From the NCBI GenBank assembly GCA_965637545.1, contig OZ281497.1, positions 24,676,001 through 24,740,000 on the forward strand: a DNA stretch of 64,000 bases, given 5' to 3'. Every line of letters begins with the position of its first letter. Position 1 is the stretch's first letter. This document shows, piece after piece, positions 12,458 to 59,715 of this stretch. Source of the stretch: Phallusia mammillata (Eukaryota). Below the pieces are notes generated by a model. That model was not told where the DNA came from, ran no database searches, and saw nothing but the letters and a program-made list of their open reading frames with translations. The position numbers were made by a program, and so were the translations under genes.

Positions 12458-15400
12458 CTACGATTGTTGAAAAGAACCAGTGAGCGTTGCCACCATAAAT
12501 GGGGCGGTAAATTGGCTCAGGTTTCCCATCTTGCTGGAAGGTTGGGGCTGAACTTCAAGTACATCGTCTGTCACGTTGATTTCATCGTGGTCAGTGGTAC
12601 TAACTCGTGATAGATCCTTAAAAACTAAAATTTGGAAATTAAGTGGATGTTACATTGAGATTGATTGTACTGTTCATATTGTACTTACTTTGTTCTGCCT
12701 TAGGGCGCACAGAAGCATCTCCGTCCCAGCATTTTCTCATGAGGTTTGTGAGGATATTAAAAATCTCCTTGTCATCATCAGCAAGTGTTGTTTCCACATT
12801 TTCGACATACGTCTCATCAGGTCTAACACCTGATGAAATTCGTGCCATCAGGATCTCTTCCGACAGTGTACGGCCGTAAAAAATCGGATTCAATGTCACG
12901 ATTTCATACAAAACCATTCCGAAGCTAAAAAAGGTTACATTTAAAAAAAAAATTGTTATCTCTATCCATATACATGTATTCACACCTGTAAATGTCTGAT
13001 GCTGGGTCAACCGATCCACCTTTGTAAAATTCGGGTGAAACATACAACAACGAATATTGCCTTGTGATGGTCGTGTCTACTGTGCTGGGTTTCATACCTG
13101 AAGCTCTGATGACGTTATTTGCCCCAAAATCGGAAAGTTTAAGGCATAACCTGGTGGTAAGTAGAATATTATCGGGTTTTATATCACCATGACAAAATAT
13201 TTGGCCTGGATTGTAGTTGTGCAGGTATGTAAGAGCCGAGATAAGTTGTCGAGCGAAACGAAGCCTCAACATCCAGCTGACTTTTTTCTCCCTGTGTTTC
13301 TCCAAATAACGTGACAAATTTTCACCACCGATGAATTCCAGTATTATGGCAATCTCGTTATTCCAACTTGTGAAGCCATAAATTTGCACGATGTTTGGAT
13401 GTTGGACTCGAACTAAGGTTTCAGCTTCTCCCTGAACACTGAAATATTATATTTGTTATGTTACTAATGATAAACCACCAATTTTTGTTTTTTCCAGATT
13501 AACCTTGTCTCTACCCATTTGCATTTGAAAGTTAGGAGTTACTGGCAACACGACTTTGTTTTATGTTCAGTGGAATTTGAGTTCATCATTATGACGTCAT
13601 TGTGGTGTGATTACGTCATAGTACACAGGTAGCGCTGTTAATAAAATTTACCTTTACCACACTTCACCTTTTTTTGTGACTGTATATTTGATTTACTTCG
13701 CCAGTCAGAGAAATACATTTTGCAACAACTGTTCCCAAAGATTCGTGGAAACACCGACGAATTGCACCAAATCCTCCACAGCCGATGTAGTCTACTATGT
13801 TAGTGCTAGTTGAAAGCGATACTGCATCGATTTTAGCTAACTTTGATGAAAAGTGGATCTAAAAAAGCACAATTTTGTTACGTAGTTTCAAATACGTTTT
13901 GATATGAAGAACCCTAATCAAGATTTTCGATTTGTTTGGATAGTTTGCTGATCTCAGCTGTAACACTGAAACAGAAAGTTCTTAATGTCCACTTACAAAT
14001 TTGCCGTAAAACACGTATCATCTATTTTATGAAACAACCATCAATAAAAAACAAATTGCAAACTTTCAGGTTCTCATTTCTTCGCTGATATATTTTTAAC
14101 TCGTTGCTGAGGAATTCATCAAGCTGAGAAATGTATTTTCCCACAAGATCTGACCCGTTGCTGTGATCAACAGACAATACGAAAGTTTCCGCTTGCTCCT
14201 TGGCTTTAAAATGAGCGGATTTGATCACTTCCGCGTCCGTGTAACCAGTTCCACATATCTGCAACAACATTCAAGAATGAAAGATAAGTAGAGTCTAGTG
14301 GTTCTCAAAAGGGTGCCACTTGGCTCCCCAGGGGATAAATTTAATTTTCTGGGAGCAAATTCGTTCCAGTAAGGAATTAGGGATGAAAAGTTGTGTATAA
14401 GAAACATTTTCATTACTTTTTAATTAAATTCATAAAATTTGGACAGCCTGCTTCGCCATTCTTACAGCATGTAAGAAGGTCCAGCTGCTGCAGTGACTGC
14501 TGGCATAATAAATCAGGTTTTTCCAACATTTTCTTCTTAGTAGGGATTCGTTGGTACACCGCAAGTCCCGGTGTCGTGGGTTCGAATCCAACCACAGGCC
14601 ACAGTAATGTTTTTGAATCTGGTTTAGTACAACGTACTGTGCTTTTTCATGATTTTGCCTGCGTACCGCACCTTACTGTCTTCCTTGTATTTAACATACC
14701 TCTTCCATTGAGCATCTGTACTGAAGCACGGCACGCATCTTTTTTTCTTCAAGTTGGCCTCTTAGTTCCTCCTGTGACATAGTTTGTTAAAGTAGTCACC
14801 TTTGGTAATTATTTTAAGTCTTGCAGATCTTTTGTCACCTGGCACAATCTAATGCAATTATTTTTATGCAAATAAAACTAATAAAAAACTAATAAATATA
14901 ATAAGCAAATTTACCCGTTTGTGAAGGTTGTTTTCGGTAAATTGCTTCAGCACTGCATCTAAACGACTCTCTAGTTTTTCTTTATACTTTTCCGCTATTT
15001 CTTGTGGATGTTGATTTGTTTGTTGTAAGTATAAATCAACAGCCGTTTTTCGATAACCCTCTTCGATTTCATGTAAATCATTTTCTTCGAAATATTGTCC
15101 ATCGCCTAACTGAAAACATTACAAATGTTTGCATCATTTATTTCCGTGATCGATGAAAGGATAGAAAAATGAGAACATCATCCGTGTGATATATTTCTCC
15201 ACTTTCTTACTGTGCAACTGTACATACTGTACATTAACAGAAAAATTGTCGATGAATTAGACGCTTTATTAATTTAAAGTCCTACAAAATGGCCAATTAA
15301 AATCCAAAACAAAACCAGTTTGGCCAAAAAGCTATTATTTTTTTATCAATCAACTTACGTCGTCACGTCAATCGGTAAAATACCAAACTTAAAGCGAAGG

Positions 15401-17785
15401 AGTAGAAAATACCTACATAAATACCATTAGAAACATACCCACAAGAAATTAGACAGATATGTACAGAGTCAGTAAGATGAATTGATTTCTTATTGTTAAG
15501 TTACCTTACATTAGATTTTAACCAACCTCTCCAAGATTTTGTTTGTATGAACGCTCTGCAGCAAAAATGGATTCCCGCACTTTAAGCTTTACTTGTTCCT
15601 AAAGAGAAACTATACCATTACTCATTTAAAAGTTCGTATTTTCATCAAATCGAAAAACATTATAACTTATATTGAACTATCACCAAACACAAATATACCG
15701 TGCAATAACACAAAAACATAACAAAACCTTTGTAGCCATGTTAATTTTCTTATACTCCTCAAATTCATGGTTTATAATATCTTCCAAGTTTTTTCGATGC
15801 TTTTCAACAAACAAATCGTTGCCAAACTTTGGCATCTGATCAAAGTTAACCAATGTTTTCTTTTTACACACTTCATTGATGTCTAAAATCTCTTTGTCAG
15901 TTTTGTACTTATTTTCACACGCCTGAAACAAAGCGTTTAACTTTAATACTTAGTTTAGGTAGTAAAGGTGCAACTTACCTGATTCATATGTCGGCGATAA
16001 ATATCTCTGCATTTTTGATTAATTTCTAAAATAGCAGCTATCGCCGTTGTCTAAAAACAAGTAAAAATAGTGAGACATCTAAAAAACGGTTCGTTTTTGA
16101 AACAAGACGTCATCGATAAACTGCATGCGCAATGACTGGTAATGATCCCGTTCCATCTAACCTTGTTTAATTTTAGCGCGTATGGGCCATACTTACTTCC
16201 ATAACTGTACCGACTTTGGGCATTTTTCCACTGCAAAATAAATCGACGTATTCAAACGTAAAATTGATGAGATCTTTTCCTGTCACTGGTTTGTTGTTTA
16301 CTTCTTTCACTACAAGATTGTCAGGATGGAAAAGTCGTCGAACAAGAACATCCACCATTTGTTTGAAACAAGTACGTACCCCTAAAAGCCACGTTAATTT
16401 ATGTTTGGGGTGAAAACTGATTTAATTTGGAAGCTCAACAACAAACTCATCACTACTTAGGTAAAAATAGTTTTCTACAAAACCAAAAAGTATTGCAACT
16501 ACCTGCCACATCAAGCTGACTCTGGTTTTCGTACATTCTCCCCAATTTTTCTCCGGGATGAGGCATCAGAAAGCAGGAAACGTTTTTAAAAGAATCACGT
16601 AAATTGTTTCGAACTGATTTAATATCTTTATGATCGTATTGTACTTGGAACACCCTGTCAAGCAGTTCATTCCCTCCATCGAAGCCAAAGGGAACATCAG
16701 GAAAAAGCCAATCTCGGACAAGAAACATTATGTCCTAAAGTAAATTATGTTCATTTTACTACCAATCTACATCCGCACAATCAATTCATATACCTGAAGA
16801 GATCTGTCGTCTTGCTTTAGTATCTTTTGGGCCACTCTTAAGTACTCCGTAAACAGCTGTAAACCGTTCAAAACAGTTAAATGAGGTATGTACAGATTAT
16901 AGTCATTGTACTAACATGCAAATGTTGCAAAGTGTCCTCTTTGATAGTGTTCTGCACGTTGCATATTAGCTTTGAACTTATCAGGGTACTTAGTGCAAAG
17001 ATCACCGAATTATCTTCCACTGAAGATGAGGAATCGAACCAACCTTGAGTGTCCATTAAAAATAATGCCACCTAAGAAACGTTCATCATATATTGTCAAT
17101 TATAACTCTACCTTCAAATCATACTGGTAGATTATTGTGCTCAAACAAACAAAACAAAAATGATTCAACACACCCGTTCGTGTTGACGCGTTTTTACAAA
17201 AAAGGGCTCATCCCATATCCATATTCCGTGTGTGTGGTGCCTCATTCCACCCCTCCATCCAAAACCTCTTAAATCAATTTGTTGTTGTTGTAGCCACGAT
17301 GCTGACTACAATATAAGTGAACGACATCATCACCTCACATATATCTTTCGTTGAAGGTTAGGTATACCTACCGTTTTATTTTGTGCCCACAAAAATCGCA
17401 TCATAAGGTTAAGCATGAATGATTTTCCAGTCCGAAATGGTCCACCAAGAGAGTAAATAGCAACAGGTGTATCAACAACACCTGGATGTTGAAAAATCCT
17501 TTCAAAAGCCGTTTTATCGATACTGTAACGATTTGTGTGATGTGGAAAGATGTGCACTGCCTTATGACCGGTATTGGTGTGACCTTTAAACCACAGTCAA
17601 ATTTTGGATACTTTGAAAACATATTAAACACAGTAAACCGAAAGCAATTGAACTCGAAGCCACTTACCAATATTTGCACTTGTAGATTGAATTCTAAGTT
17701 CCTGGAATCCTTGCTCATTTTGTATCCCTGCTATATCATTCTTTTCCCTGTCAGCAACGTTTTCAGACACTTTGGATTCAGACAT
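12458..17785 (-). CDS. ATL-K1: atlastin/GBP-family GTPase + three tandem three-helix-bundle modules + RIPK-like protein kinase (predicted 981 aa)
   Basis: 17 exons (minus): 17785-17668, 17583-17372, 17305-17174, 17071-16916, 16856-16794, 16734-16503, 16381-16197, 16050-15979, 15922-15728, 15598-15527, 15109-14915, 14771-14700, 14258-14064, 13858-13668, 13438-12986, 12924-12689, 12624-12458. Total 2946 nt, all GT-AG, phase-compatible, no internal stop. GTPase motifs: GPFRTGKS, GWRGGMRHHTHGIWIW, MDTQG, LFTEY, FLVRDW. Kinase motifs: IGCGGFG, VVAK, HGDIKPDN, DFG, YVSPE. Confidence 0.85.
14537..14601 (+). mobile_element. tRNA-derived SINE-like fragment in an ATL-K1 intron
   Basis: Canonical B box GGTTCGAATCC at 14579-14589 with a weak upstream A-box-like segment. 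Absent from the paralogous ATL-K2 intron. No complete cloverleaf. Confidence 0.4.
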
Positions 17786-20929: not shown

Positions 20930-23900
20930 TTACGCTTTTTCAACAGAACTAGTGAGCGTTGCTATAATAAATGGGGCAGTGAATTGACTCAGGTTTCCCA
21001 TCTTGCTTAAATTGGGGGGCAAAGCTTCAGGTACATCGTCAGGCACATTGATTTCGTCGTGATCATCGGTACTAACTTGTGACAACTCATGAGCAACTTT
21101 AAATATAAAATTAAGTAGATGTTACGTTAAGATTGATTGTACTGTTTAATTTACAGTTACTTTGTTCTGCTTTTGGACGCGAAGAAGCATCTCCGTCCCA
21201 ACATTTTCTCATGAGGTTTGTGAGTAAATTGAAAATCTCCTTGTCATCATCAGCAAGAGTTGTTTGAACATTTGTCACATGTTTCACATCGTCGTCCGGT
21301 CTTAGGCCTGATTGAATTCGCAGCATCACCACCAAGGAAGGGCGTTGATTGCCGTGAAAAATCGGATACAATGTCACGATTTCATACAAAACCATTCCGA
21401 AGCTGAAAAAATGTATAAACAACGGGGCTTAATGCAACACCTTGATTGTTTGGAATCATATAGGTTTTGTTTAAATTCTCAATGGTCCTTAGAAACCAAA
21501 TATACAATGACAGCTAACCTGTAGATGTCAGATGATGGGTCAGGTATTCCCTCTTTAAAAAACTCAGGGGAAACGTAAAAAGCTGTATATTCCTTGGTGT
21601 TGCTCGTGTCAACAGTGGTTGTCATTTCAGTAGCTGCTATGACGTTATTTGCCCCAAAATCAGCAAGTTTCACACATAGATTAGTGGTAAGTAAAATGTT
21701 TTCGGGTTTTATATCACAATGACAGAATGTTTCGCCTGGTTTGTAGTTGTGCAAGTATGAAAGAGCTGAGATAAGTTGTCGTGCACATCGAAGTCTCAAC
21801 TTCCAACTCAGCCTTTTTTGCCTGTGTTTCTCCAAGTAGCTTTTTAGATTTCCACCATCTATGTACTCGAGTATTATGGCAACCTCGTTATTCCAACTCG
21901 TAAAGCCATTAATTTGCACAATGTTTAGATGACGGAATCGAACCAACGCTCCAGCTTCCCGCCGAACACTGCAAAGTGTATTAAGTGGTATAAGGATGTT
22001 GAACGTATAATTTTTGACTTTTTACACCGGTCTGTTCATTTGACATTGTCTACATAGATATTTTGGACCATTTTGTCATCTAACCCTTAAACTAAATTTT
22101 TTGATACCAATTAACGTGGAGACAGACTCTTTGAAAACTTCTTTTTCATCATTTTTTGTCCCTTTTTATCATTTTTGTCACTCATTAAATATTTTGCTTG
22201 TACATACCCATTTTTGCGCTTGTCTATTTCTGGACTGCTGCCTTTTAGAGATGTGCACTTTGCAACAACTCTTCCCCAAGATTTGTGGTAGCAACGACGA
22301 ACTGCACCAAATCCTCCACAACCAATGTAGTCTGTCTTGTCAATATTTGTAGCTAGTGACACTGCGTCAACTTCAGTTAACTTGGATGAGAACTGCATCT
22401 GAAACAACGCAAAATATGTAGTTTACGACAGAACAAATTGAGATTAGTTAGTGAAGTGTCGCAGTAGACCATTTCGACAAACAATGTCAACAGTCGATTA
22501 AACATTGTCATTAAAATGTTTAAAATATATTTTTACCTTGGATTGACTCTGTGCTGGTTTTTTAAGGACTTCCACAGATTTAACGACATTGACTTCTTTT
22601 GCAACAGGATGAAAGTGTGGCCTATGGTCTTCTGATGCCCGAGGTTTTGATTGGCTACTGGAGTGAGAGCTCTAAATCAAAAACGTTTTTTAATACAACA
22701 ACAAAACCAAGAAAACCACGGGAAAACTTAAATTAGATGAGCATGTTAAAAAAGGTTAACAAACGTCCAAATTTTCCGTACCGCGGCGTTGAACTCTTTC
22801 GACACGAGATTTCCATCCGAAGTAGAGGGTACTAAAACAGGTATGAAAAAATTTAATGTTTAATGTTTATAACAAACCGGCACAAAAAATAAACATACAC
22901 CGGCATTCCTGAGTTTTTTGTTAACCAAAGATTAAGGATGGATTTTAGCAGTAAATTTTAAATAAACATACAACATTGTTTTCCAGCAGGATTTACGATT
23001 TGGTGTGTTTTAGTTACAAATAGACTTTACTGATATAACAAATCACAAAACGCGTATTTGCAACGATTTTAATTTTTAGACTAACCATCTTTATCCAGCA
23101 TTTTGAACTCATCTTCATTTCCAGTCATTTTATCCTCGTCTTGTCCTTGAGGAAATATCTGAATAACAACAAAATTAACATCATTTTAATGCTAATTTGT
23201 AGGACAATATCCTATCACTATTTTCCATACATTTTCTTCTTTTATGGTTACTAGGTTGCATATTACCTTCAGGCTACAAAAATAAATTTAAAACAACTAG
23301 TCCAAATAGTTTAAAATACCCATAAACTTGGGGTGAACTTGCAATTGATAGACGTGTCTAACACCACAAACCTGTCGCCTTGCTCGGTAAGCTTGCTGGG
23401 TATGCCGCTGATCAACGAAAGGAAGTGATGAGTTGAGCATATTTACTAGAGATGAAGCAGATGTAATAAGTTCCGGATCATTGGCTTCATGAATCAGACC
23501 ACACACTCGCTTGATATTCTCCGCATATAAGTTAAACTCAGATGTAATGGGTTCCAATAACCAAAGTTTCTTAAGTGACCAATCTTCCCCGGAGCTTTTA
23601 GAGACCAAGTTTTCAAGTCTACGAAAAACAAAAGAATCGCACATACCAAAAGCAAACTTGGATACAAGTTTCCATCGGTCCTCGGTTAAATGTTTCTGCT
23701 GCTTTCGAAATTCGTTCAAGGGCAAGACCATCATCATGTAGAAAGCGCCAACTCGCATTCTTGGCCCTGTAGATGATCTGTTGTTACATATTGGCTACAA
23801 GTGAAAGCAAGAATTCGAGTAAGTGAAACAGACTGAATATCTCCATCGTAATTCATCAGGCAGTTGAGTGTCAATATGAAATTGACAGGAACATAACAGT

Positions 23901-25689
23901 ATGCAAATACATTGCTGTTTAGGACAAGTTTTTGGTGTATAGCATCATATTTGCTTCCACATATCTGTCGTCCGAGCTGGATCTGCGATTTTTGAGATAA
24001 ACCAAGTATCTGGACTATAAACCTGGGTCGGTACGACGGATGAAGGTTGTATAGTTGAGCTGGTCGTGATGTAAATATCTTCCGAGCACGTGGAAGCAAG
24101 TTTCCTCCCGCTAAATGCTTCAAGTACCCTTCTGCAAAATTTCGTCCATTTAATAGTGGTTTAGGAACCAAACTGGAAAATGATTTAAATGCTGCCATAT
24201 CTAAACCATCGAAAATGATCAAAACATTAGGATCACTGCAAATGGCAGCGAGTATAATAGTTGCCTCATCAGGTGTGCAAATCCAATCCGATAACATGGT
24301 GGAAATGAGAAACTGAAGAAGCGTCATTTTTGTAGTGAAGTTAAGTAGCCTGATGACAATGTAAAAGATAAACGATACTCTTCCACACAATTGTCCATCT
24401 AACGCTTGGAGGGCCCACTTTTTTGCTGGTGTGGTTTTTCCTATTCCAGCTTGCCCAATCACGCCAACTATATTTCCATGTCTTTCGATGTAGTTTTGTT
24501 TTGCTTGTTTTTCATGCATTTTAAATTTTTTCGAAGCCTCGTGATGTGAAAGTAGTTTGGCAACATTAAACATTTCTGCACCAGTAATGTTACTTTCAGG
24601 TCTTTCATGAAGTTTTTTAAAAGTCTCTTCTTGGTGATAATGTCCTTCTGCTTGAAACATGTCGTCAATTTGTTTTGGTTTGTTAATTAGGGCAACGGGG
24701 ACGGGTTCTATAGCTTGGTCTAAAAACTCAGCAAGAGACGATTCTTTACTGGCGATGTCTTTGACTTCTCTCTTTAGTAAAGACTTCAGTTCTTCACCCA
24801 AAAGTGGAAGGAAATATATGTATGTCACTATGGTGCTCTCAGTTACAATGCGGTAAACTGCGCTCCTTTATAGTGGTATTGTGTTCGCACGTGTAATTGT
24901 TGGTTGTGCTCTGTTTTTAAAGATTTCCGCTACTGAATCGCAGATCTATTCCAAACCAAAAAAGTGTTCTACAAACGTAGTCGTTTTCATGTTATCTAAA
25001 AATGAAAACTAGAATATTTGTTTAATGATTTTCATTTAGCTTCGTTTCCCATGAACTACGTAACGTTAAATATATTTTTTTAACCCACAAGTCAAACAAA
25101 GCATGTCCTTACATTTTTCATTTCCTGGGGCTGGTGTTGTTTGCTGATGTTGACTTGCTGAAGGCTGGGCTGCTGTAGATTGATAGGGTTTCTGATTGAT
25201 CAAGATATACTGATGAAATTCTACCGGTGCGTTGAACACTGGTCCAGTCGTGTGGGTGATGGTGTCTCCAAACTGTGGAGCTTCTGCTTCCCCCTAAAGT
25301 CAATGATAACCATTTTAAATAAATTGCAACTTCCTTAGTTGTACGATCCTTTTTAATTTCTTACAATATTAATAACATTGCCTTCTGGATTAACTGGAAC
25401 CATGTTGATTGCATTTGTCGGTGGTTCTTCTTTTGCTGCTTCTTTAGATAAATTGGACTGGGGTCGAACATTGTCCGATTCTCGGAATACGCCAATTGGA
25501 GGCACAACGTCACCGGAACCTTAAAATATACAACTTGTGTCAACAAAATCGTAAAGCTAAAATGCTTTGTAAGTTACCTGCATTATTAGTTTGACTGTTT
25601 TGGGGAACATCATTATCCAAGACTTGAGATGAGTTTAGTTGGGGTAAAGCATCGCCCAATGAGGGCGCATTAGGTCCGTGTTGAGCCAT
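20930..25689 (-). pseudogene. NLR-K1: disrupted RHIM-like + NACHT + RIPK-like kinase gene; kinase exons still open
   Basis: Exons 25689-25578, 25519-25365, 25293-25113, about 24797-23372, 22671-22537, 22398-22208, 21968-21519, 21402-21161, 21096-20930. The NACHT exon acceptor is GG instead of AG (24798-24799). A net 208-nt deletion relative to NLR-K2 at 23744-23754 removes the winged-helix region and shifts the frame. Walker A region GKTTP and Walker B DGLDM deviate from the paralog. Confidence 0.8.
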
Positions 25690-32369: not shown

Positions 32370-35300
32370 TTAAACAGAACTATTGAGCGTTGCCACCATA
32401 AATGGGGCGGTGAATTGGCTCAGGTTTCCCATCTTACTGGAAGATTGGGGCTGAACTGCAAGTACATTGTCAGCCACATTGGTTTCGTCGTGGTCAGTGG
32501 TACTAACTTGTGATAAATCCTGAAAAACTAAAAATAGGAAATTAAGCTTATGTTATATTAAATTGATTGTATTATTTATTTTGCAGTTACTTTGTTCTGC
32601 CTTAGGGCGCACATAAGGATCTCCATTCCAGCATTTTCTCATAAAGTCAGTGAGGATATTGAAAATATGCTTCTCATCACCAGCAAGTGTTGATTTTACA
32701 TTATTAACATGCGTCTCATCCGGTCTTACACCTGATGAAATTCGTGCCATCAGGATCTCTTCCGACAGTGTACGGCCGTAAAAAATCGGATTCAATGTCA
32801 CGATTTCATACAAAACCATTCCGAAGCTAAAACGAAGACATTTTTTCAAAATTTGTTAACTGTTTCCAACTACAGGCATTCACACCTGTAAATGTCTGAT
32901 GCAGGGTCAACCGATCCACCTTTGTAGAATTCGGGTGAAACGTACAACAACGAATATTGCCTTGTGATGGTCGTATCTATTGTGCTGTGTTTCATACCTG
33001 AAGCTCTGATGACGTTATTTGCCCCAAAATCGGAAAGTTTAATGCATAACCTGGTAGTAAGTAGAATATTATCGGGTTTTATATCACCATGGCAAAATAT
33101 TTGGCCTGATTTGTAGTTGTGCAAGTATGAAAGAGCCGAGATAAGTTGTAGAGCGAATCGAAGTCTTAACTTCCAACTCGGATGTTTCTCCCTGTGTTTC
33201 TCCAAATAACGTGACAAATTTCCACCACCGATGAATTCCAGTATTATGGCAATCTCGTTATTCCAACTCGTGAAGCCATAAATTTTCACGATGTTTGGAT
33301 GTTGGACTCGAACCAAGGTTTCAGCTTCTCCCTGGACACTGAAATATTATATTTGTAAAGTAAAAAATGTCGTTTTTACTGATGATAAACAACCAATTTT
33401 GTTTTCCAGATTTACCTTATTTTTACCCATTTGCATTTGAAACTTACTGGCAACACGAATTTGAGTTCATCATTATGACGTAATTGTGCTGTGATTACGT
33501 CACAGTACACAAGTAGCGCTGTCATTAAAAATTTACCTTTACCACACTTTACCTTTTTTTGTGACTGTATATTTGATTCACTTCGCCTGTGAGGGAAATA
33601 CATTTTGCAACAACTGTTCCCAAAGACTCGTGGTAACATCGACGAATTGCCCCAAATCCCCCACACCCGATGTAGTCTACTATGTCAGTGCTAGTTGAAA
33701 GCGATACTGCATCGATTTTAGCTAACTTTGATGAAAAGTGGATCTAAAAAGCACAATTTGTTACGTAGTTTCAAATATATTTTTACATGAACGATCCTAA
33801 TCGACATTTTCAAAATGTTTGATTAGTCCGGCACATTTATTGATCTCAATACAGTAAACATTAAACTGTAACATTTGTTTAAGTCGAGGTTCATTGGTGT
33901 AAAACATATTCCTTGGGTTTACAAAAAAGATTTTTTTAGATTCGTTGTCCATTGCTTTACGTAACAAACAAGCACAAGCTTCGACATTTTACTCGTATCA
34001 GCTTGCTCAAAATGTGGGATTCGCCAAGTCGGACTTTGCCTCAATGTCCAAACGGATTTTTAAGATATGGGAGTATTTTTGACGTACCGCACATAAAATG
34101 ATCAAAAAAGTCCGGTTCGTGTCTTCTATTCAGCAAAATAACTCTAAACGACAATTTTACAAACTTTCAGATTCTCAATTCTTCTTCGACACAATTTTAA
34201 CTCGTTGTTAAGAAATTCATCAAGCCGGGATATATATTTGCCCACAAGCTCCGATCCTTTGCTGTGATCCACTGACAAGACAAGGGTTTCTGCTTGCTCC
34301 TTCGCGTTGGAATGAGTTTGTTTGATTATTTCCGCGTCCGTTGAACCAGTGCCACATATCTGCGCAACATTTACGGTTGGAAGATATGGCGAAAAATAAA
34401 AAAGTATGGTGAAAATAGTAGCGATTATCGTGTCGATTAATCTGTTATGACTGATTGTTTAACAACAATATGTTGCCTTCAGTAAGGTGTATTGTTTTAT
34501 TCATCAGTATTTGTAACTCCATTTGAAGTGGTACATACCTCTTCCATTGAGCTTCTGTACTGTTGGATGGCACAAGTCCATTTTCCATCAAGTTGGCGCC
34601 GCAAATTCTCCTGTCAAGATATTGAACTTTTACACTTGTTATGACAAAACGTTTTGATGAGCTTAGCAGATGTATTGTCCCCTGGCAAAATATCATGCAA
34701 GTGTCTTAAACACTGACATTGTTGAAAATATAACTAAAACTAATAATTTGACACAAAGTTTTAAAAATAAATCATTGTAAATATTACTCCTTTGTGATGG
34801 TTTTTCTCTTTAAATTGCTTCAGCGCTTCATCTAAACGTCTCTCTAGTTTTCCTTTATACTTCTTCACTATTTCTCGTGGATATTGATGTGTTTCTTGGA
34901 AATATAAATTAACAGCTGTTTTTCGAAAGCTCCCCTCGATTTTATGCACTGAGTTTTCGTCAACATGTTGTCCACTGCTTAACTGAAAACATAAATAAAA
35001 CAGCATGCAACAATACATATGTTTTTACCACATATGTATAGATATGTAATCAATGATAGTCAACAAATCAAGAAATGCTACACTACCGCTGTTAAACAAT
35101 TGTCCAAAGAGTTCATGCGAAATTTGAAATGATCGGATTTATAAACGTTTTTACATTATTCTATTTTATTCATTCATTTAAAAATTCTTTGTCTGGATTG
35201 TAACAAGGTTTATGTCAATAGACAATCAAAAATTACTTTACGTTTTTTGTGACATATTATGTAACCAATATAATAACATTGTCTACCTCTTCGAGATTTT

Positions 35301-38150
35301 TTGTGTACATTTGTTCAGCAGCAAATGTAGATGCGTGCGCTTTGAGTTTCATTTGCTCCTAAATAAAGATAAAAACTAAAAAAAGCTTTAATCTTTGTTT
35401 TGTATTACTGTTCGCGATTTTGATAAAATTTGCACTTCACACCACTATGGGTTGTCCAATCATTATTTTTTGTTCAACGGTGCAACAAACATTACATTTA
35501 CTTTTTCTTAAACATTTATCAAATAATTTTTTTAAAAACCTTTTCGGCTCCGTTAATTTTCTTGTACTCTTGAAATTCATTTTCTACGAAGTCTTGCAAT
35601 TTTTCAAAATACATTTTGTGAAACGCATCGTTGCCAAACTTGGGCTTGACTTCGAAGCTCAACAAGACTTTTTCTTTGCACTTATAATGGATGTTTATAA
35701 ATTCTTCGTCACTTTTGAAAGCGTTTTTGCACAACTGCAAGGAACAAATCTTTCACTTTAAGTATTTTTACAGTTAGCATACTGATTAACCACCAATTTA
35801 CCCGTTTCATTTCTTGGCGATACTCGTCTTTGCATTCTTGAACAATGTTTAAAATGTCCGCCGTTGCCGTAGCCTAAAACAACACAGTTAAACTACGCGT
35901 TTTTCATGAGGATCAATTTTACAAAAAAATCAGTTTAACCTCTTGTGTTATTTTCAAACCAATACAAATAACAAGATATATTGTTCTAGAATCTAGACAA
36001 TCTACGTCCAACTCACCTGGACACTGGTGCCAATTTTAGGCATTTTTTCGCTGCTAAAAACGTCAGCGTATTCAGACACAAAATTGATGAGATCATTTCC
36101 TTTTACCGGTTTGTTGTTGAATTGTTTTACGACTAGTTGATCGGGATGAAAAATTCGCCTAGCAAGGACTTCCACCATTTCTTTGAAGTTGTCATGTAGA
36201 TCTTAAAAGCGAAGTACCAGTTTTCAACTGCCTTTTCCTTTTAGTTTAATGTTTTAAGTTTGAAGAAATCACATTGTTTTTCAGCAATGACAAATTACTT
36301 AAAAAGCTTGTATTTTCATTCTCTATTGTCCCGAACTTATGTGTTGACAATTCGATACACATACTAACCACTTGACAAGTCTAAATGAATGTTCTCTCGG
36401 TGCCTCTCGGCAATTTTGTTTCCAGGAAAAGGCATGATGAAACACGAAACATTTTCAAATGAATCAAGCAAGTTTTTTCTAACTGATTTGATATCTAAAT
36501 GATCGACGTGTACACGAAAAATTTTCTGAAGATATTTATCCCCTCCATCAAATCCAAGCGGAATCTCAACGTAAGGGAAGTCACGGATAAGAAACAGCAA
36601 TTCCTGAAACAAGGTAAGTGTTTTACAAAACAAAAACTCCATAACATTTCACAAACCTGGAACGAATTGTTATCATGCTTCAGGACTTTTTGTGCCATTC
36701 TTGCGTATTCAGTAAACAGCTGTAAACAACTATATTTAACATCACTGTGTGCGTAGTGAACAAAACTAAGTAGTTAAACAAAACTGACGTGAAGATGTTG
36801 CAATGTGTCTTCTTGAATCATTTGTCTTGTGTTGTATATTTGCATCGAACTTATAAGGGTGCTTAATGCAAAGACCATGGCGTTGTCTTTCACAGAGGAT
36901 AAAGCGTCGAACCCACCTTGGGTATCCATCAGAAATAATGCAACCTATAAATAGTTTTTGAAACATTATTGTCACAAAACGATTTTTTGATGTCTTCTAC
37001 AGTACAAAAAAATTGATAAATTTCTTGCGGTAACTAAAATCAGGACAAAAACAGAAGACAAAAACCAACAAGGCCGTGATGAGAAGTGGATACAAAAAAA
37101 GGCTCATCCCATATCCATATTCCTTCTGTGTGGTGCCTCATCCCATCACTCCACCCAAAACCTTCGTCCAATTTAATTTTTTGGGATTGAACCCATGACT
37201 GTGACTAAAACAAAATATATAGCACTATAACCTTACGCAACAAATGATTTTTTTATTATTACCACCAAACAAATATACCGCATTGCTTTTTTCTGCCCAT
37301 AAAAAACGCAGAAATAGGTTAAGCATGAATGATTTTCCTGTTCTTGATCGCCCACTAATAGAATAAATGGCAACAGGTATGTTGGCGACATTTGGATGAT
37401 TAAATATCTCCTGAAATGCCTGTTTGTCGATTCTGTAGCCATGTCTGTCATCCCGGACGATAATTTCCACAGCTTTGTGAGCAGGAAGACAGTCTACCCT
37501 CTCAAAGCCTAAAAACAAGATATTCAGAAAACAACATCAAGTTAATTTTGGAAGTAGCAAATAATGTAACTTCCCAACCTCAATGTTGTAATAGAATTTG
37601 TTAAAAATAAACAAATACAAAAATAGTTGCTTTCAAAAACTTCATTGATAGATAACTTTCAGTTTCGATCAGGCATCAGGATTTGGGACACACTAACATA
37701 TTTACTTTACTGTGCAAACATTATTAGGCTTTAAAAATTCAACGATAAAATCTTTCCGTTTGGATAGACAACAGTAACATTTCCAACGCAATGTGAAGAT
37801 GCTATTATTACACAACAGTAATTCAGATATACGAAATGCGTTAACTAAATCGACCCATTTTCAAGCATTCCCGGCGATAAAATTCGGCCTGCTGTAGGTT
37901 TCGAACCTCCGACAAAACCATGCTACACACAAGGTGCTGTTTGCCCACCTAAACTACGCAGACAGAAAGTCAAAATACATGCCGCGTATGCACTGGGATG
38001 TGAACTCACGTTTGAAAACTGCTGTGGCTGATGATGACTAAGAACACGTAAAAATCACTTACCAACATCCGCATGTGTAGTTAAAAGTTCCTCTTCTTTT
38101 TGATTATCTTCAATTTCACCAGAAATCCCAGGATAGCTGGATTCAGACAT
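32370..38150 (-). pseudogene. ATL-K2: atlastin/GBP-family GTPase + 3x helical module + RIPK-like kinase, with a single +1 frameshift before the kinase
   Basis: Exons 38150-38063, 37508-37279, 37204-37070, 36944-36789, 36719-36657, 36603-36369 (or 36372), 36201-36017, 35873-35802, 35734-35540, 35358-35287, 34982-34788, 34610-34539, 34360-34165 (196 nt instead of 195), 33743-33553, 33338-32886, 32826-32591, 32527-32370. Motifs: GRSRTGKS, RHHTEG, DTQG, FLIRD, HGDIKPDN, DFG. An extra A (plus-strand T4 at 34329-34332) gives TGA at 34222-34220. It could be a sequencing error or a kinase-less 612-aa GTPase. Confidence 0.7.
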
Positions 38151-51050: not shown

Positions 51051-53666
51051 ATTAAACTACCTGCCATGTAAGTTTGGGTTCAATATTCCCAGTGTTAACG
51101 AAGCTACGACGGTTTCCGCTAAAGTGTCCCATTATACCCATGTTTTTATACATTGCTTGCAAACAGACGATATTATTTAATTTAGCTCGATTGTTTGCAG
51201 AAAATTCTACCCGGCGGTGGACAACTTCATTTCGTCAAATAAACCGATATATTAGCAACCATTTGTTGGTTTTAATAACGCAACGGTATTATACGACAAA
51301 ACAATTAACAGTAGCAAAAATTACTGCAAAAAAGTAAAAATGTGAAAGTTTATCCTAAACGGCAAAGCATTACAGAACTCCTGCTTTTAACGTTTGACAG
51401 AAAGATATAGAAATATGCCAGGTATGAAATGAGGATGCTGCATTTTTACGGTTTTCCAACAAAGTCGGCAACATCATTTTGGCGAGTGTATCTACACATA
51501 AACGTTCATTTGATTTGTGCGATTGTTGACGTCCAATTTTGTGTTTGATATTTTATTCGACTGTAGGGGTTTAGAGAAACAAACATTGCGATTAAGGCTC
51601 AAGACTATTTGTGATACTTAGATAATGTAGTATAATACTGATGGCAAAATCTTGTTTAAATTCGGCGTACACTGCAAGATACAAATTAAACAAAAAAATA
51701 CAAATTGTAAGAGCAATACCTATGACGTCAAAAGACTGTAGTTAAAAAAATTAATACAATTTTACCGAACTAGAGAGTAAATCATCTGGAATAGTGCACA
51801 AATCTCAACAATAAGCAAGTGCGTTCACTGCTTACACAAACAAACAAACGTAAGTTGACACGCCTACACATGATGTAGATTTTTATTCCTGGTTTACTAT
51901 GTAAAAAAAATATGCGAAATGATTTCTACAGTTTTACAGTTTTGCGCATAGTTAAATCACATTCTCTACTTTGCAAATGAAACACCCAACACAAAACGTA
52001 TATAACAAGCAAGCTTACTCCGCAACACAAATATATTTACTGGGAAATGTGCATAGACTTGAACCACTCATAATCGATTTTTTATAATAGTTAACGCCTA
52101 ATATTTGTGTTCGAATATTTGAGAAACGTAGAAAACGTAATAGCGAAGAAACCAGAACAATAATAGAACAATGCCTACGATATACAATGGATACAATTTG
52201 AAAATCAGTGACAGTATTGGGACACAAGGTGGCCGCTTGGTAGAACTCGAGAGCCAATCAACAATATAGTTCCCCCATTTCTACACCAAGCGCCCGAAAA
52301 CATGCGATAACTATTTACACAAACAAAGGCAAGTCGATACACGTACAAGTCATAACAATATGATTAAAATTGTCATTTCTTGTTTACCATGGGAACTAAT
52401 TTACCCGAAATTATTTGTACAATTTTACATTTACATTTTACCTATAGTTAAATCACATCCCCTACTTTGCAAATTAAAAATACAACACAAAACGGATGAA
52501 ACAAGCGAGCTTACAGCGTAGGAAAAGCAGATAGGAGAAGTCAAGACGTTGACGTTTTCCTTATATATATTAATGGAACTTTATCGCACCAACAATAAAT
52601 GCACAAGAGAAACAAAAATAAACTCGATGACAAAAACAGGAAGAACAGAACATAAAATAGGCAACAATAAACTTGCAAAGTAATATTTGCTTAATAATGC
52701 CATTTACAGTGATTAAGAGAACATTTTGCAGCCTGTAGAGTGTAGATAAATACCTTGTACGAGCTGCGTGCACGAAAGCAGGCGATTTCAATATGTACAC
52801 AACAAAACGCCGGGAAACTGATTGAGATGTTATTTAACACTGATAAAAAACTTATTTTAGTCATAAGCATTGGCTGTATAAACATTTAGATAGATCCCAG
52901 TTCCCGAAATTAAACTTTTGTCCCCAGTCTCTACTGCAAGGTAAAGCATACCACAAGACAGCTCCACATTTAGATAAAGCGGAAAAAGGGGGGTGGGGTA
53001 GGGTGAAAAACTAAGTTTTAAAGTTAGTTTTAAATTTTGTTATATCACCTTACTTTAACCCACATTGTCTAAACTGGCAGAATTTTTTGTAATGTCTCGT
53101 TTTAACAAATACGTATTGGTGCACTTTGCTTCACTTGTCGGAATTTAGCTAAATATTGAGGTGACGTGAAATGGTGTTAGTAGATTTTTCCCGGTACATA
53201 TAGTACAAAAGAAAGTTACAAAAAAACTTTGTAGAAATGTCATTTAGGTGTGTCTTCGGAAACGCTTTAAGCTAGCTTCTGTTTCTTTTTACATTTCCAC
53301 AAACCGGTAGAAATGTCTGTGGAATACTTCCACGGAGGTACACTGAAACAAAAAAAAACAACCCTTAGCAAAAAAAGCAAATGGACAGTCAGTTCCACAG
53401 GCTGAGGCTAATTTTAGATCGAATTGTAACACACACATTTGTCAAATGCTTTGCTGGCACAAAGTACACGAATCGCAACAATAAGAACTCAACTCGTACC
53501 AATTTAAGACTGGAAGCAGGCTGAATAAGCATGCCTTTCTTTCAGGGTTCAAAAATATGAAACTTGTGTCAAGCCAACTAGACAAAATAAAGGTACCAGG
53601 GCGTAATGAAAAAAACTGGTTATTCATTAACATACTTGTTTACCAACCTGAATCACATTGCGACCC

Positions 53667-56600
53667 TTACGCTTTTTCAACAGAACTAGTGAGCGTTGCT
53701 ATAATAAATGGGGCAGTGAATTGACTCAGGTTTCCCATCTTGCTTAAATTGGGGGGCAAAGCTTCAGGTACATCGTCAGGCACATTGATTTCGTCGTGAT
53801 CATCGGTACTAACTTGTGACAACTCATGAGCAACTTTAAATATAAAATTAGGTAGATGTTACGTTAAGATTGATTGTACTGTTTAATTTACAGTTACTTT
53901 GTTCTGCTTTTGGACGAGAAGAAGCATCTCCGTCCCAACATTTTCTCATGAGGTTTGTGAGTAAATTGAAAATCTCCTTGTCGTCATCAGCAAGAGTTGT
54001 TTGAACATTTGTCACATGTTTCACATCGTCGTCCGGTCTTAGGCCTGATTGAATACGCAGCATCACCACCAACGGAGGTCGTTGATTGCCGTGAAAAATC
54101 GGATACAATGTCACGATTTCATACAAAACCATTCCGAAGCTGAAAAAATGTATAAGCAACGGGTTTAATGCAACACCATGATTGGTTGGAATACAGGTTT
54201 TGTTTAAATTCTACCCAAATATACAATGACAGCTAACCTGTAGATGTCCGATGCTGGGTCAGGTATTCCCTCTTTAAAAAACTCAGGGGAAACGTAAAAA
54301 GCTGTATATTCCTTGGTGTTGCTCGTGTCAACAGTGGTTGTCATTTCAGTAGCTGCTATGACGTTATTTGCTCCAAAATCAGCAAGTTTCACACATAGAT
54401 TAGTAGTAAGTAAGATGTTTTCAGGTTTAATATCACAATGACAAAATGTTTCGCCTGGTTTGTAGTTGTGCAAGTATGAAAGAGCAGAGATAAGTTGTCG
54501 AGCGAACCGAAGTCTCAACTTCCAACGCAGGTTTTTTTGCCTGTGTTCCTCCAAGTAGCTTTTTAGATTTCCACCACCGATGAATTCCAGTATTATGGCA
54601 ACCTCGTTATTCCAACTAGTAAAGCCATAAATTTGCACGATGTTTGGATGACGAAATCGAACCAACGCTCCAGCTTCCCGCCGAACACTGCAAAGTGTAT
54701 TTAGTGGTATAAGGATGTTGAACGTAAATTTTTTGACTTTGTACACTGGTCTGTTCATTTGACATTGTCTACGCAGACATTTTGGACCATTTTGTCACCT
54801 AACCCTTAAATTAATGTTTTGATACCAATTTACCTTGAGACAGACTGTTGGAAAACTTGATTTTTATTATTTTTTGTTATTTTTGATAATCAAAACCACT
54901 AATCAAATATTTTGCTTATACACACCCATTTTTGCGCTTGTCCATTTCTGGACCGATGCCTTTCAGAGATATGCACTTTGCAACAACTCTTCCCCAAGAT
55001 TTATGGTAGCAACGACGAACTGCGCCAAATCCTCCGCAACCAATGTAGTCTGTCTTGTCAATATTTGTAGCTAGTGACACTGCATCAACTTCAGTTAACT
55101 TGGAGGAGAACTGCATCTGAAACAACGCAAAATATGTCGTTTACGACAGAACAAAGTGAGATTAGTTAGTGAAGTGTCGCAGTAGACCAGCGGATCTCAA
55201 TGTGGGGTCCGCGGAACTTTAAGGGTCCGTGAGGCAATTTTGGGGGAACCGCGAAGTTGAAGTAATGCGATATTATTATTTGGCGTCAGTTTGTGTCACT
55301 AAAGAAGTTTAAATCAAAGTTGAATTGAGAATTGACTGCCTCCATTGCTAGACAATAGCCTTTATTGAATGACAACTATCAAAAACGCAATTGTTCACAA
55401 TCGTAATGCTTCTTGTTTTGTCTGTGATGTTACAAGCTGTCTTTGGATGATTATTATGCGCCCTTTTGCATAACTAGCTAAAATCAACTTTCGTTTCTAT
55501 GAAATACACATTTAGGCTTAGGACCGCGACCCCTCAAAACAATGGCAAAAAAACGTTTTGAAAAAAATATGAAAAAGTTTGATAACCACTGCAGTAGACC
55601 ATTTCGACAAACAATGTCAATAGTCAATTCAACACTACCATTAAAATGTTTAGAATATATTTTTACCTTGGATTGACTCTGTGCTGTTTTTTTAAGGATT
55701 TCCGCAGATTTAACGACAATGTGTTCTTCAGGATTAGAGTGTGGCCTATGGTCTTCTGGTGCCCGAGATTTTGGTTGGCTACTAGAGTGAGAGCTCTAAA
55801 CCAACGACGTTTTTTAACACAACGATAAAATAACCAAACCACAGAAAAAATAAATTAATTTAGCATGTCAAAAAATTTTTACATTTTCCGTACTGTAATC
55901 AAATTAAAACAATTAGTTTAAAATACGACTTAAACTTGATGTGAAATTGATATGTCTAATAGCACAAACCTCTCCCCTGGCTGGGTGAGCTTCCAGGGCA
56001 TGCCTCTGATCAAAGGAAGGAAGTGATGAGTTGAGCATTTTTAATAAAGATGAAGCAGATGTAATGAGTTCCGGATCATTGGCTTCATTAATCCAATTAC
56101 ACACTCGCCTGATATTTTCCGCATATAAGTTCAACTCAGATGTAATGGGTTCCAATAACCAAAGTTTTTTAAGTGACCAATCTTTCGCGGAGCTTGTTGA
56201 GACCAAGGTTTCAAGTGTATCAAAAACACCAGAACCGCACATACCAAAAGCAAACTTGGATACCAGTTCCCATTTGTCCTCGGTTAGTTGTCTCCGTAGC
56301 CTTTGAAAGTCATCCAAGGGCATAATCATCATCATGTAGAAGGCGGCAAAAAACTCCTGCCAGGTGAGATGAGAAAAGTATCTTACTTTGTGTCCGTCTA
56401 ATATCGTCAGCTTCATATTCACTTGCTTTGTTACTGGTATGTTTAGGAATGCATTTATCGTTGAAGATTTAATCCCAGCTTTTTCAAAGTCCCTGTCTTT
56501 TAAAACAAATTTTCCGTTGAGAAAAGCATCCCAAGCCATTTTTGCCAGTTTCTCCATATCACATTCTTGACTCTTCGGATGATCTGTTGTTAGATATTGG

Positions 56601-59600
56601 CTAAAAGCAAAAGCTAGAACTCGTGTGAGTGAAACAAACTGAATATCTCCATCGTAATTCATCAGGTAGTTGAGTGTCAATATGAAATTGACAGGAACAT
56701 AACAGTATGCAAATACATTGGGGTGTTGGATAAGTTTTTGGTGTATAACCTCGTAGTTGTTTCCACATATCTGACGTCCAAGTTCATCCTGTGATGTTGG
56801 AGTTAAACCAAGTATCTGGACTATAAACTTGGGTCGGTATGAAGGATGGAGCTTGTGCAGTTGAGATGGTCGTGATGTGAAAATCTTTCGAGCACGTGGA
56901 AGCAAGTTTCCTCCCGCTAAATGCTTCAAGTAACATTCTGCAGTATTTTTTTCATGTAACAGTGGTTTCGAAATCAAACTTGAAAATGATTTGAATGCTG
57001 CCTCATCCAAACCGTCGCAAATGATCAAAACGTGAGGATCACTGCAAATGGCAGAGAGTATAACGGTTGCCTCGTCACGTGTGCAGTTCCAGTCTGATAA
57101 CATGGTGGAAACCAAAAACTGAAGAAGCGTCACCTTATCCATGAAGTCAAGGTGCCTGATCGCAATGTAAAAGACAAATGATACTCTTCCACATAACTGT
57201 CCACGTATAGCTTGTAGGGCCCACTTTTTGGAAATAGTGGATTTTCCTATTCCAGCTTGTCCAATAACGCCTAAGACATTTCCATGTTTTTCGATGTAGT
57301 TTTGCTTAGCTTCTTTTTCAACTGTTCTAAATATTTTCGAAGCCTCGTGTTGTGCCATCAGTTGTGCAACATTAAACATTTGTTCACCGGTAAAGTCACT
57401 TGGTGGTTCATAGACCTCCTTTATGCGGCGGTAGTGTCCTTCTGCTTGAAAATCGTCTTCAATTTGTTGTGGTTTGCTGACCATGGCAACGGGGACGGGT
57501 TCTATAGCTCGGTCTACAATTTTAGATAGTGACGATTCATCATCAGCGATGGCTTCAACTTTTTTGGTGAGTAGAAACTGTAGTTGCTCATCTAAAAGAG
57601 GAAAATTAATAGTTTGACAAATAATTTTTCGTCATCATGGTGCTACAATGCGGTGAGCTGTGTTCCTTTGTAGTGCATTGCGGTAGCATGTGTCGTCTGC
57701 TTTCTTACGAACGTGAGTGACACTACTTTCGCGTTTTAATAAGTGGGTTTTCTTAAATATTGCAACTACTGACGGTTGCAAACATAGGGGTAAACCTGTT
57801 AACTAGCAATTAAAACCTATGAATAATCCTATTATGTGTGTGTTTTAATGATCTTTTTTTGTTTCGTTTCCGGTGGACTACGTCACGTAAACATTTTAAA
57901 ATTTTCTCAAACGACTTAACTCAAAAGTCAGACAAAGATAGTCCTCACATATTTCATTTTCAATGGCTTGTGTTGTTTGCTGATGCAGACTTGCTGAAGA
58001 CTGGGTTACTGTAGATGGGCTCTTTGCTCTCCCAGGTTGTGCTACCGGAGGAGGAGGACTTTCTGATTCCGTCCATAGGTTATGGTCTGTATGTGGTTGC
58101 TTTGCATTGCACCCTGGTCCACTTGTGTTGGTGGTTGTGTCACCAAGCTGTACCACTTGTGCTTCCCCCTAAAATAAATTTATTATCGGTTATAGATGAT
58201 TACACTGGTCAACACAATTTTTGGTGTCTTTAATGTTAAAACTGATATTGACTAATTTTGGGGTGCTGATTTCAAAAATCATTACGGTTTTCTTCAACCA
58301 GATCAACTTTTTAAGTTATTTACAAAATCAAAATTTATGACCATATTGATTCAATGACTTTAAAATCATGCTTTTATGTGTTTGTTAAAGTTTTGTTACA
58401 TTATACACATCAATTTCCTACAGTGCAGTCAGTTTTATAGCATATGCGTTCTATGCTTATGCTCTGTCTAAAAATGGTTGGTGCAGGCTAGCGGTAACTT
58501 TGAACTATACATGTTTTATGGAATGATTTTCAGTCTAGTAAAGCAAGGTGGTAAAACTAAAATTAATAGTGGCTAGGTCATCTATAAGGTGTTGCATGAA
58601 TTACCAAGATGTTTTATGCTACATTTCTGGTGTAAACCCATACAACACAACTAAAAAGAAAAAAAGGTCTGTATCAAATGTGCATATCTTGCACACTTCG
58701 ATGAGGTCTTAGGGGTTTAGGACAAGCAATTGGCTCCACTTACCTAATGTTGACTGGAATATTGCAGTACTGGACAAAAACAGCAAAAAGGGACTGAAAT
58801 TATTAGAAAGAGTACATAACTAAGTTATTGAGCGGTCTGAAAAATTCGGTAACAAAATGAGTATAAAGCTACACTTCCCTCTTGAAACGTAGGTGATAAA
58901 ATTGATCAGAATTAAGCTGAAAGGTTTCATCAGGATATTAGTAAAACAAAATGTGTCAGGGAAGAAGGAATAATGTGGTCCTGGCTAACTGCTGTTGGTC
59001 AATTAAACGGGACGATATTGCTGCCACTCAGTTCCGAAAGTTACCAAAGTACATGTGTAGGGGTATACCTGATAACTTACACATTTGAAACATTTTTTTG
59101 TTTTTTTGTGTTGAATTTTGTTTCTTAGGAGTGTCCACCTGTTACATTTAAAATTAAATTCGAAATTTTGTTCTTGCAATAACGTTAATTCTAAATAAAT
59201 ACTCAAAACCAGTTTTACTTTTGTGTATAACTTACATATAGATTGTTTTTCAAATGTGGATGTACCATAACACAAAAACTAGACGTGATACAGATAAACT
59301 GGTTGCATTTTTGAAATCAGAGCACTAGAATTAGTCAAAATCAGTTAAAACATTCCAGACACTAGTAAAAAAATATTTTTTTTTTGTTGCCCAGTGTAAC
59401 CATTGGAAATAAAAGTATAATAGATCTTTTCGAATTTCTTACAATTTTTGTAACATTGCTTTCGGGATGAGCTGGAATTAAGTGGGCTGGAACTGTATCC
59501 GATTCTCGGGATACACCAAGTGGAGATGAAATGTCAACCGAACCTTAAAATATACAACTTGCGTCAAGAAAATCGTAAAGTTATAGGATGCTTTGTAAAT

Positions 59601-59715
59601 TACCCGCTTTGTTGGTTTGACTGGTTTGGGGAACATCATCATTCAAGACTTGAGATAAGTTTTGTTGAGGTAACGTATCGCCCAATGCGGGCGTATTAAG
59701 CCCGTGTTGAGCCAT
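53667..59715 (-). CDS. NLR-K2: N-terminal low-complexity region with a RHIM-like motif + NACHT (no LRR) + RIPK-like kinase (predicted 1077 aa)
   Basis: 9 exons (minus): 59715-59604, 59543-59443, 58168-57949, 57591-55970, 55795-55667, 55116-54926, 54687-54238, 54139-53898, 53833-53667. Total 3234 nt, GT-AG, phase-compatible, no stop. NACHT motifs: GQAGIGKS, LIICDGLDE, IFTSRP, YVPVNF, FSHLTWQEFFAA. Kinase motifs: IGCGGFG, VVAK, HCDIKPEN, DFG, YVSPE. Confidence 0.85.
55168..55591. mobile_element. hAT-Charlie-type MITE in an NLR-K2 intron
   Basis: TIRs CAGCGGATCTCAA / TTGATAACCACTG and a perfect 8-bp TSD CAGTAGAC. The empty site is in NLR-K1 at about 22460. Confidence 0.9.
58203..59396. mobile_element. 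Non-autonomous TIR element (1194 bp) flanked by TA, in NLR-K2 intron 2
   Basis: Ends TA-CACTGGTCAACA ... TGTTGCCCAGTG-TA, with about 100 bp of imperfect inverted subterminal sequence. The paralogous NLR-K1 intron is only 71 nt. Confidence 0.8.

Follow-up and report, generated by a model that had tools for sequence, protein, structure and literature searches.

The 64-kb window analysed here, C4:24676001-24740000 of the 240-Mb Phallusia mammillata assembly, carries on its minus strand, at 53667-59715, a gene whose predicted product joins a NACHT module of the NLR type to a protein kinase. This focal gene is termed copy A. A copy with the same exon order, B, lies at 20933-25689 (-) of the window and another, C (L001; C4:24.785-24.790 Mb), lies 56 kb from A; D, E (L003; C4:24820001-24830000), G (L005; C4:24764001-24774000) and the neighbour F (L004) are further loci referred to below. 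Copy A can be modelled as nine exons, the last four of which form the kinase cassette. All junctions are AG/GT with a pyrimidine tract, and the spliced frame is open over 1053 codons. We infer the splicing from sequence, and the locus remains a gene prediction. The predicted protein has ~1053 amino acids (aa), or ~1010 aa without the fifth, ‘linker’ exon; the length of 1077 aa given in the first-pass annotation was not reproduced, the gap being a small N-terminal detail.

The NACHT half is encoded by exon 4 (55970..57591 (-), 1622 nt), which contains a FISNA-like segment followed by the NACHT nucleotide-binding domain (NBD), HD1, the winged-helix domain (WHD) and HD2, and ends at a phase-0 donor, GAG/GTTTGT. 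The first-pass annotation had placed a complete NACHT module in this single exon, and the Walker A (GQAGIGKS), Walker B (DGLDE), sensor-1 (TSRP), WHD (FSHLTWQEFFAA) and HD2 (WELVSKFAFGM) sequences are indeed all found in 57591-55970. Pfam assigns the exon to NACHT (PF05729) at 4e-18, with NOD2_WH and NLRC4_HD2 slightly below their cut-offs, and a sequence search of the PDB matches NLRP3 at 1.3e-16, the best solved relatives being NLRP3, NLRP1 and NLRP5. An AlphaFold2 (AF2) model built with 36 homologues has a pLDDT of 82.7 and a pTM of 0.81; Foldseek aligns it to NLRP3 NACHT crystal structures (E 1e-19 over ~530 columns) and to NOD2 (TM 0.55), and the last 18 residues of the exon product are predicted to be disordered. 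On these matches and the disordered tail, exon 4 is predicted to encode the whole FISNA-NBD-HD1-WHD-HD2 unit and nothing beyond it. An NB-ARC identity, as in the plant NLRs with integrated domains (NLR-ID), was considered and rejected, the NTPase matching NACHT rather than NB-ARC.

The nucleotide-binding residues are well preserved. In the alignment of 36 sequences G110, G113, G115 and K116 of Walker A are invariant, as are G193, D195 and E196 of Walker B (LIICDGLDE) and S239 and R240 of sensor-1, while D192 and the WHD histidine (H407 in FSHLTWQEF) are nearly so. Among the copies the exon has a dN/dS of 0.13-0.33, the A-C pair standing at 0.33 with a dS of 0.45. In copy C, Val replaces the first Asp of Walker B (FVGLDE against CDGLDE in A) in an otherwise intact open reading frame (ORF), so that its NACHT may perhaps be impaired as an ATPase. 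The closest named relative of the exon is COS1.5 of P. mammillata itself (58% identity), followed by NLRs of Clavelina and Ciona.

In ordinary members of this family (L004, L006 and L007), leucine-rich repeat (LRR) exons of the RI type lie downstream of the NACHT exon, and the genome holds at least 307 candidate NACHT exons. No LRR exon was found in the 64-kb window, in copy C or in copy D by tblastn with the family LRR exons and a motif scan, for which positive controls were found in L003, L004, L006 and L007. With Pfam searches of the N-terminal exons also empty, the earlier description of an LRR-less gene with no visible death-fold exon holds, and the window contains no cryptic LRR exon of the kind that had been envisaged as a threat to it. 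Compared with the family, copy A has ~17 codons deleted at the 3' end of the NACHT exon, and its donor lies 9 codons past the usual position.

The kinase cassette appears to occupy the place of the repeats. Kinase exon 1 (54926..55116 (-), 191 nt), entered through a phase-0 acceptor, encodes the Gly-rich loop GCGGFG and the beta3 lysine (VVAK). Kinase exon 2 (54238..54687 (-), 450 nt; Pfam Pkinase, 1.9e-29) encodes the alphaC Glu (RREAG), a non-RD catalytic loop (HCDIKPEN), DFG and SPE; kinase exon 3 (53898..54139 (-), 242 nt) covers subdomains IX-XI (DIYSFGMVLYEI ... CW ... RP), the exons together also encoding DIYSFG and SSRP. Kinase exon 4 (53667..53833 (-), 167 nt) supplies the C-terminal tail, in which SKMGNLSQFTAPF is a conserved motif, and terminates with TAA at 53669-53667. 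The catalytic residues are invariant in a ten-copy alignment and the kinase looks catalytically complete. Its dN/dS is 0.14-0.31 in all pairs of copies and 0.14-0.18 in the youngest. The C-terminal motif (MGNLSQFTAPF in copy A; window 53700-53745 (-)) is kept in all eight kinase copies of the cluster and recurs in a related form, LSNFTQPF, in the C7 relatives (L009, about 3060-3110 and 9450-9500); it may be a docking site.

Copies A, B, C and C7a have HCD in the catalytic loop, and the others HGD, all being of the non-RD class that is linked to innate immune receptors and is typical of plant and animal pattern-recognition receptors (PMC3621455). A profile of the ten copies scored against the PDB gives 96 bits for JAK1 JH1, 81 for an L-type lectin receptor-like kinase (RLK), 74 for FERONIA, 70-72 for Snf1/AMPK and 65 for RIPK2. 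A RIPK assignment was rejected, RIPK2 ranking below both JAK1 JH1 and the plant RLKs (74-81 bits), and the Atlas look-alikes were uninformative. By sequence the kinase is therefore best described as non-RD and TKL-like, not specifically RIPK-like and not a RIPK orthologue. The analogy to RIPK2 that the first-pass annotation implied survives as a functional one only. Multi-kinase proteins dominate the public search, in which nothing exceeds 49% identity; among the best single-domain matches (43-46% identity) are kinases joined to Kelch repeats or to glycosyl hydrolase 20 (GH20) domains.

The N-terminal region is made up of three short exons. Translation would start at the ATG at 59715 in exon 1 (59604..59715 (-), 112 nt), which is open, ends in phase 1 at a GT donor and is 68-77% conserved at the aa level in B, C and D. 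Exon 2 (59443..59471 (-)) is a predicted micro-exon with AG/GT borders that returns the frame to phase 0; it is 29 nt long, as in B and C. Exon 3 (57949..58168 (-), 220 nt) encodes a low-complexity segment without a Pfam match, in which VVQLGDTTTNTSGP is a degenerate copy of a family motif, APQIGDTNIHTTGPVYNAPV. This motif, at 58100-58168 (-) in the window, is also present in L006, in L010, at residues 90-115 of P0001 and in Phallusia COS1.5. It is conserved across the NLR family, and its consensus, PQIGDTNIHTTGP, fits the pattern QIGxxNxxxxG, which we take to be that of the RIPK1 RHIM; the likeness to a RHIM core is one seen by eye, and the copy A motif has lost its Asn. Pfam finds no RHIM, DD or CARD in the N-terminal exons; exon 3, residues 1-230 of COS1.5 and the 520 N-terminal residues of locus E all lack a match to any family, death folds and BIR included, at E values up to 10. 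Tunicates appear to lack RHIMs according to a 2014 survey (PMC4262963).

Whether the two halves are read as one protein is the crux of the interpretation. The first-pass annotation spliced the NACHT exon through the linker to the kinase. The common strand, the compatible phase 0 and the AG/GT sites all stand, and from these we infer, at one remove, that the exons are joined in a single mRNA. The alternative is two products: a NACHT-only protein reading through the donor to the TAA at 55915-55913, and a separate kinase of ~350 aa begun at the ATG at 55116 from an internal promoter or by spliced-leader (SL) trans-splicing. We regard it as unlikely, although several features of the locus speak for it. 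Tunicates use SL trans-splicing and operons (PMC1488885, PMC2760879), and in A, B and C, and only there, an ATG lies directly at the kinase acceptor, so that a stand-alone kinase is possible in these copies. The kinase relatives on C7 likewise seem to use a start Met of their own, a few codons further upstream.

The comparison of copies argues in the other direction. When the nine exons of A are projected onto copy C, every splice site is kept, exon lengths change by +15 and -3 nt only and an ORF of 1057 aa remains intact, even though the NACHT exon has diverged to 73% identity (dS 0.45), against 94-98% for the kinase (dS 0.10). The phase-0 acceptor of kinase exon 1 lies at the same position in 11 copies, eight in the cluster and three distant relatives. 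In five of the eight cluster copies (D, E, G and two linked to GBP GTPase exons) a stop stands directly upstream of this acceptor and no Met precedes the Gly-rich loop, yet the kinase is under purifying selection; the cassette is therefore normally internal, a C-terminal module, and cis-splicing would be the rule for it. In Ciona, cis-splicing takes precedence over trans-splicing at acceptors that have a donor upstream (PMC1488885), and an in-phase upstream donor is available here. Nor do the 60 nt that precede kinase exon 1 contain AATAAA or ATTAAA, unlike the situation in Ciona operons.

The read-through tail (55913..55969 (-)), which would be used only if the donor were not, is taken as the first part of intron 4. 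The possibility that the NACHT exon runs on to its stop, which the first-pass annotation had itself raised, does not fit the pattern of indels. A 4-nt indel lies 17 nt past the donor in A relative to B and C, and the tails differ in both frame and length, while across the 1.6-kb NACHT exon A and C differ by one indel, of 3 nt. A frame-breaking change immediately past the donor, set against one in-frame change in the whole exon, means that the coding frame ends at the donor and that the tail is noncoding. Given the intact ORF of copy C, the start-less phase-0 acceptor, the selection on both modules and the indel past the donor, a single fused ORF is the most likely reading of the sequence.

A number of observations weigh against a single fused protein, beginning with the ATG at the acceptor in A, B and C. 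The only sequencing runs matching the stretch, X1 and X2, are both genomic, with contigs that cross exon-intron borders. Four runs compared over 53660-59659 contain no splice joints, those guessed to be RNA matching only intronic repeats, and no transcript-derived fragment matched kinase exon 1 in a protein-word search; RNA thus gives the two-product alternative no evidence either way. None of 65 public NACHT homologues (593-1888 aa), annotated Clavelina, Phallusia and Ciona proteins included, carries a kinase domain, so there is no cross-species support for the fusion. Searches at 297-945 aa and 593-1888 aa alike returned no NACHT homologue with Pkinase, and the NACHT-then-kinase order that had been suggested as worth seeking in other species was not found among the public proteins. 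In metagenome contigs carrying the kinase exons nearest to these (44-49% identity), the 10 kb upstream contain no NACHT. The listed COS1.5 sequence (696 aa) consists of the N-terminus and NACHT module only, stopping within HD2 without LRR or kinase, as a two-product gene would. Two of the five NACHT-kinase loci are broken. Finally, the linker exon bears no sign of amino-acid constraint, with one synonymous to five non-synonymous substitutions between A and C and one to eleven between A and B, a pattern that also suits two products.

The linker (exon 5, 55667..55795 (-)) is 129 nt long, phase 0-0, and would encode 43 aa without Met; it has AG/GT borders, is open in A, B and C, and is optional for the frame. 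The first-pass annotation took an in-frame indel relative to a paralog as support for its coding status. The 6-nt indel relative to 22537-22671 is real, but the support that it lends is weak, the paralog being broken and the introns equally conserved: those flanking the linker are preserved as well as the linker itself. The substitution pattern rules the linker out as proof of coding. Only three copies exist genome-wide, in A, B and C, and copy D has none. On this pattern it would be either an unconstrained, disordered spacer or no exon at all. The fusion does not depend on its status: with phase 0 at NACHT donor and kinase acceptor alike, the frame is preserved when it is skipped.

The eight close kinase copies all lie within a 140-kb cluster, C4:24.688-24.828 Mb, and all eight cassettes are intact, but they stand behind different partners. 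Four are behind NACHT alone: the genes are intact in A and C, disrupted in B and interrupted by one TAA stop in D. Locus E (L003, 1582-9117 (+)) has a NACHT exon, four 162-nt phase 0-0 LRR exons of the RI type and then the cassette. The last LRR exon there has a phase-0 donor (AAG/GTTTAA) one codon before a stop, and the locus could encode a NACHT-LRR-kinase or end as an ordinary NLR. Neighbour F has LRR exons without a kinase. In locus G (L005, 2507-4460 (-)) the N-terminal motif exon of the family and a 149-nt exon, whose entry and exit phases equal those of the NACHT exon, lead to the kinase without any NACHT. Upstream of the same cassette at 12461-17557 (-) and 32373-37437 (-) of the window are exons of a GBP-family GTPase (Pfam GBP, best exon 1.2e-15). 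Elsewhere on the contig, at 28.97 Mb (L019, C4:28969501-28979500), a NACHT-family member on the minus strand has an LRR exon followed by a different, unrelated kinase of the RD type (HRDLKPHN); Pfam searches of single ORFs found no KEN domain there.

The distribution of similarity points to movement of the cassette. D and E have a kinase and upstream intron in common and different NACHT exons. The 3' block of A, B and C, from 55810 to 53400 (linker to gene end, introns included), is 90-99% identical, whereas in the NACHT half (57600 to 55900) identity is 77-90%, a sign that the kinase half of these three copies underwent gene conversion or recombination recently. Together with the kinase shared by D and E, this contrast implies that the cassette has moved, or been converted, between genes. 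As the cassette and the LRR junctions of the family are all in phase 0, exon shuffling is easy. On the partners observed, this may be a plug-in immune kinase cassette, a conserved non-RD module equipped with a C-terminal docking motif, shuffled in phase 0 onto genes for several oligomerizing innate-immune NTPases (NACHT, NACHT-LRR and GBP GTPase) and also onto a RHIM-like motif alone, a tentative proposal that we rate at a little below an even chance.

The same turnover raises the possibility that copy A was thrown up by tandem duplication and unequal crossing-over, in an NLR cluster that evolves fast, and is now decaying or was never expressed; its open frame would then reflect recent history rather than function. 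Copies B and D both carry disruptions; B has lost ~70 NACHT codons from the WHD, FSHLxWQEF included, and has a frameshift, and is probably a pseudogene with intact kinase exons. The 3' half was homogenised recently (dS 0.10, against 0.45 for the NACHT exon), no RNA was found and transposons have inserted in introns 2 and 5. We nevertheless consider decay very improbable. The spliced ORFs are intact over 1053 codons in A and 1057 in C, and the dN/dS of the youngest kinase pairs, like the 0.33 of the A-C NACHT exon, is not that of decaying copies. The repeat insertion in intron 2 (58190..59389, ~1.2 kb) occurs only in copy A, being absent from B and C, and has a very high summed contig depth; a DNA contig of run X2 skips 58301-59379, and the insertion may be polymorphic. 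That in intron 5 (55220..55518) appears as an alignment gap relative to copy B, with very high summed contig depth over 55060-55659. At the other end of the window, 29-5527 (+) is an 1832-codon Ser/Thr-rich, mucin-like open frame without a Pfam match, containing a tandem array of ~75 copies of a 30-nt repeat at 2068-4323.

The interpretation that we favour, and hold to be probable, is that copy A belongs to a very large ascidian NLR family, is specific to its lineage and has exchanged the RI-type LRR exons for a four-exon Ser/Thr-kinase cassette, giving one protein. Its order would be a low-complexity N-terminus with the degenerate motif, NACHT (NBD-HD1-WHD-HD2), a disordered spacer of ~60 residues, the kinase and the C-terminal motif. 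Nucleotide-driven oligomerization of NACHT would bring the kinase domains together, and these would then trans-activate one another and signal. This is the induced-proximity logic of NOD1/2 and RIPK2, here presumably wired in cis. NACHT and GBP modules both oligomerize on binding nucleotide. That one cassette follows both of them, and elsewhere only a short aggregation-type motif, is consistent with an output module that induced proximity switches on.

The first-pass annotation left the kinase as either an in-cis effector or an integrated decoy, and the reuse of the cassette leans towards the former. Behind GBP, NACHT-LRR and motif-only N-termini alike it is conserved and looks catalytically complete, which suggests an output shared as an effector. 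Were the fusion real and the kinase instead a decoy or sensor, it would act as bait for effectors that target host kinases, with output passing through the N-terminal motif or through partners. The missing LRR sensor means that another part must sense, integrated kinase domains have such a role in plant NLRs (PMC4759884), and a motif conserved across the NLR family could serve as output. A decoy role is rather improbable all the same, since one cassette on four N-terminal architectures, the motif-only gene and the GBP GTPases among them, fits a common effector better; the catalytic residues are all kept under purifying selection, and the copy A motif lacks its Asn.

Animal NLRs are thought to recruit adaptors and kinases in trans via death-fold domains. 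Copy A resembles vertebrate NLRP3 and NOD2 in the sequence and predicted fold of its NACHT (FISNA-NBD-HD1-WHD-HD2), with Walker A, Walker B, sensor-1 and the WHD His, and would share with them and RIPK2 the logic of an oligomerizing ATPase that activates a kinase. It differs in having no PYD, CARD, BIR or LRR, and in that the kinase is C-terminal in the same polypeptide and is no RIPK orthologue. With RIPK1 and RIPK3 it has in common a non-RD-type immune kinase and a short QIG-type motif, but the motif is N-terminal rather than C-terminal, has no Pfam RHIM match and has lost the Asn. The NACHT exon of copy A shares 57-73% identity with those of paralogs in the same genome (L004, L006, L007 and locus E), which have the motif exon too and join all exons in phase 0; copy A stands apart in having no LRR exons and in the altered 3' end of its NACHT exon.

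Plant NLR-IDs offer a parallel, a STAND NTPase immune receptor with a cis-fused kinase, produced in a rapidly evolving cluster by the shuffling of domains or exons (PMC4759884). Plant receptors differ in using NB-ARC, in usually keeping the LRR and in having a kinase thought to be a decoy, whereas here the NTPase is NACHT and the cassette is common to several gene types. The kinases of fungal NLRs are N-terminal, with WD, ANK or TPR repeats at the C-terminus; the kinase of copy A is C-terminal and accompanied by no repeats. Fungal NLRs are described as having a NACHT or NB-ARC core within very variable domain organizations (PMC4986451, PMC12258605), and the word Pkinase occurs once in PMC4986451. 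Ascidian NLRs are described as NACHT-LRR or NACHT only in a review of metazoan NLRs (PMC11508797). In the full-text literature searched, cis fusions of an NLR or NACHT to a kinase were found only for plant NLRs.

If the fusion is real, the receptor-kinase design known from plants would have arisen independently in a chordate NLR, and it would follow that kinase activation by induced proximity can be hard-wired to a NACHT oligomer. The NACHT-kinase protein would also be a compact and testable system, being a single polypeptide in which ATPase and kinase mutants are feasible. The cluster illustrates how new immune architectures arise within an NLR family by phase-0 exon shuffling and gene conversion. 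Should the kinase prove to be a plug-in cassette, this chordate would possess a set of self-contained sensor-kinase proteins, their signalosomes hard-wired in cis, of which the LRR-less NACHT-kinase would be one member.

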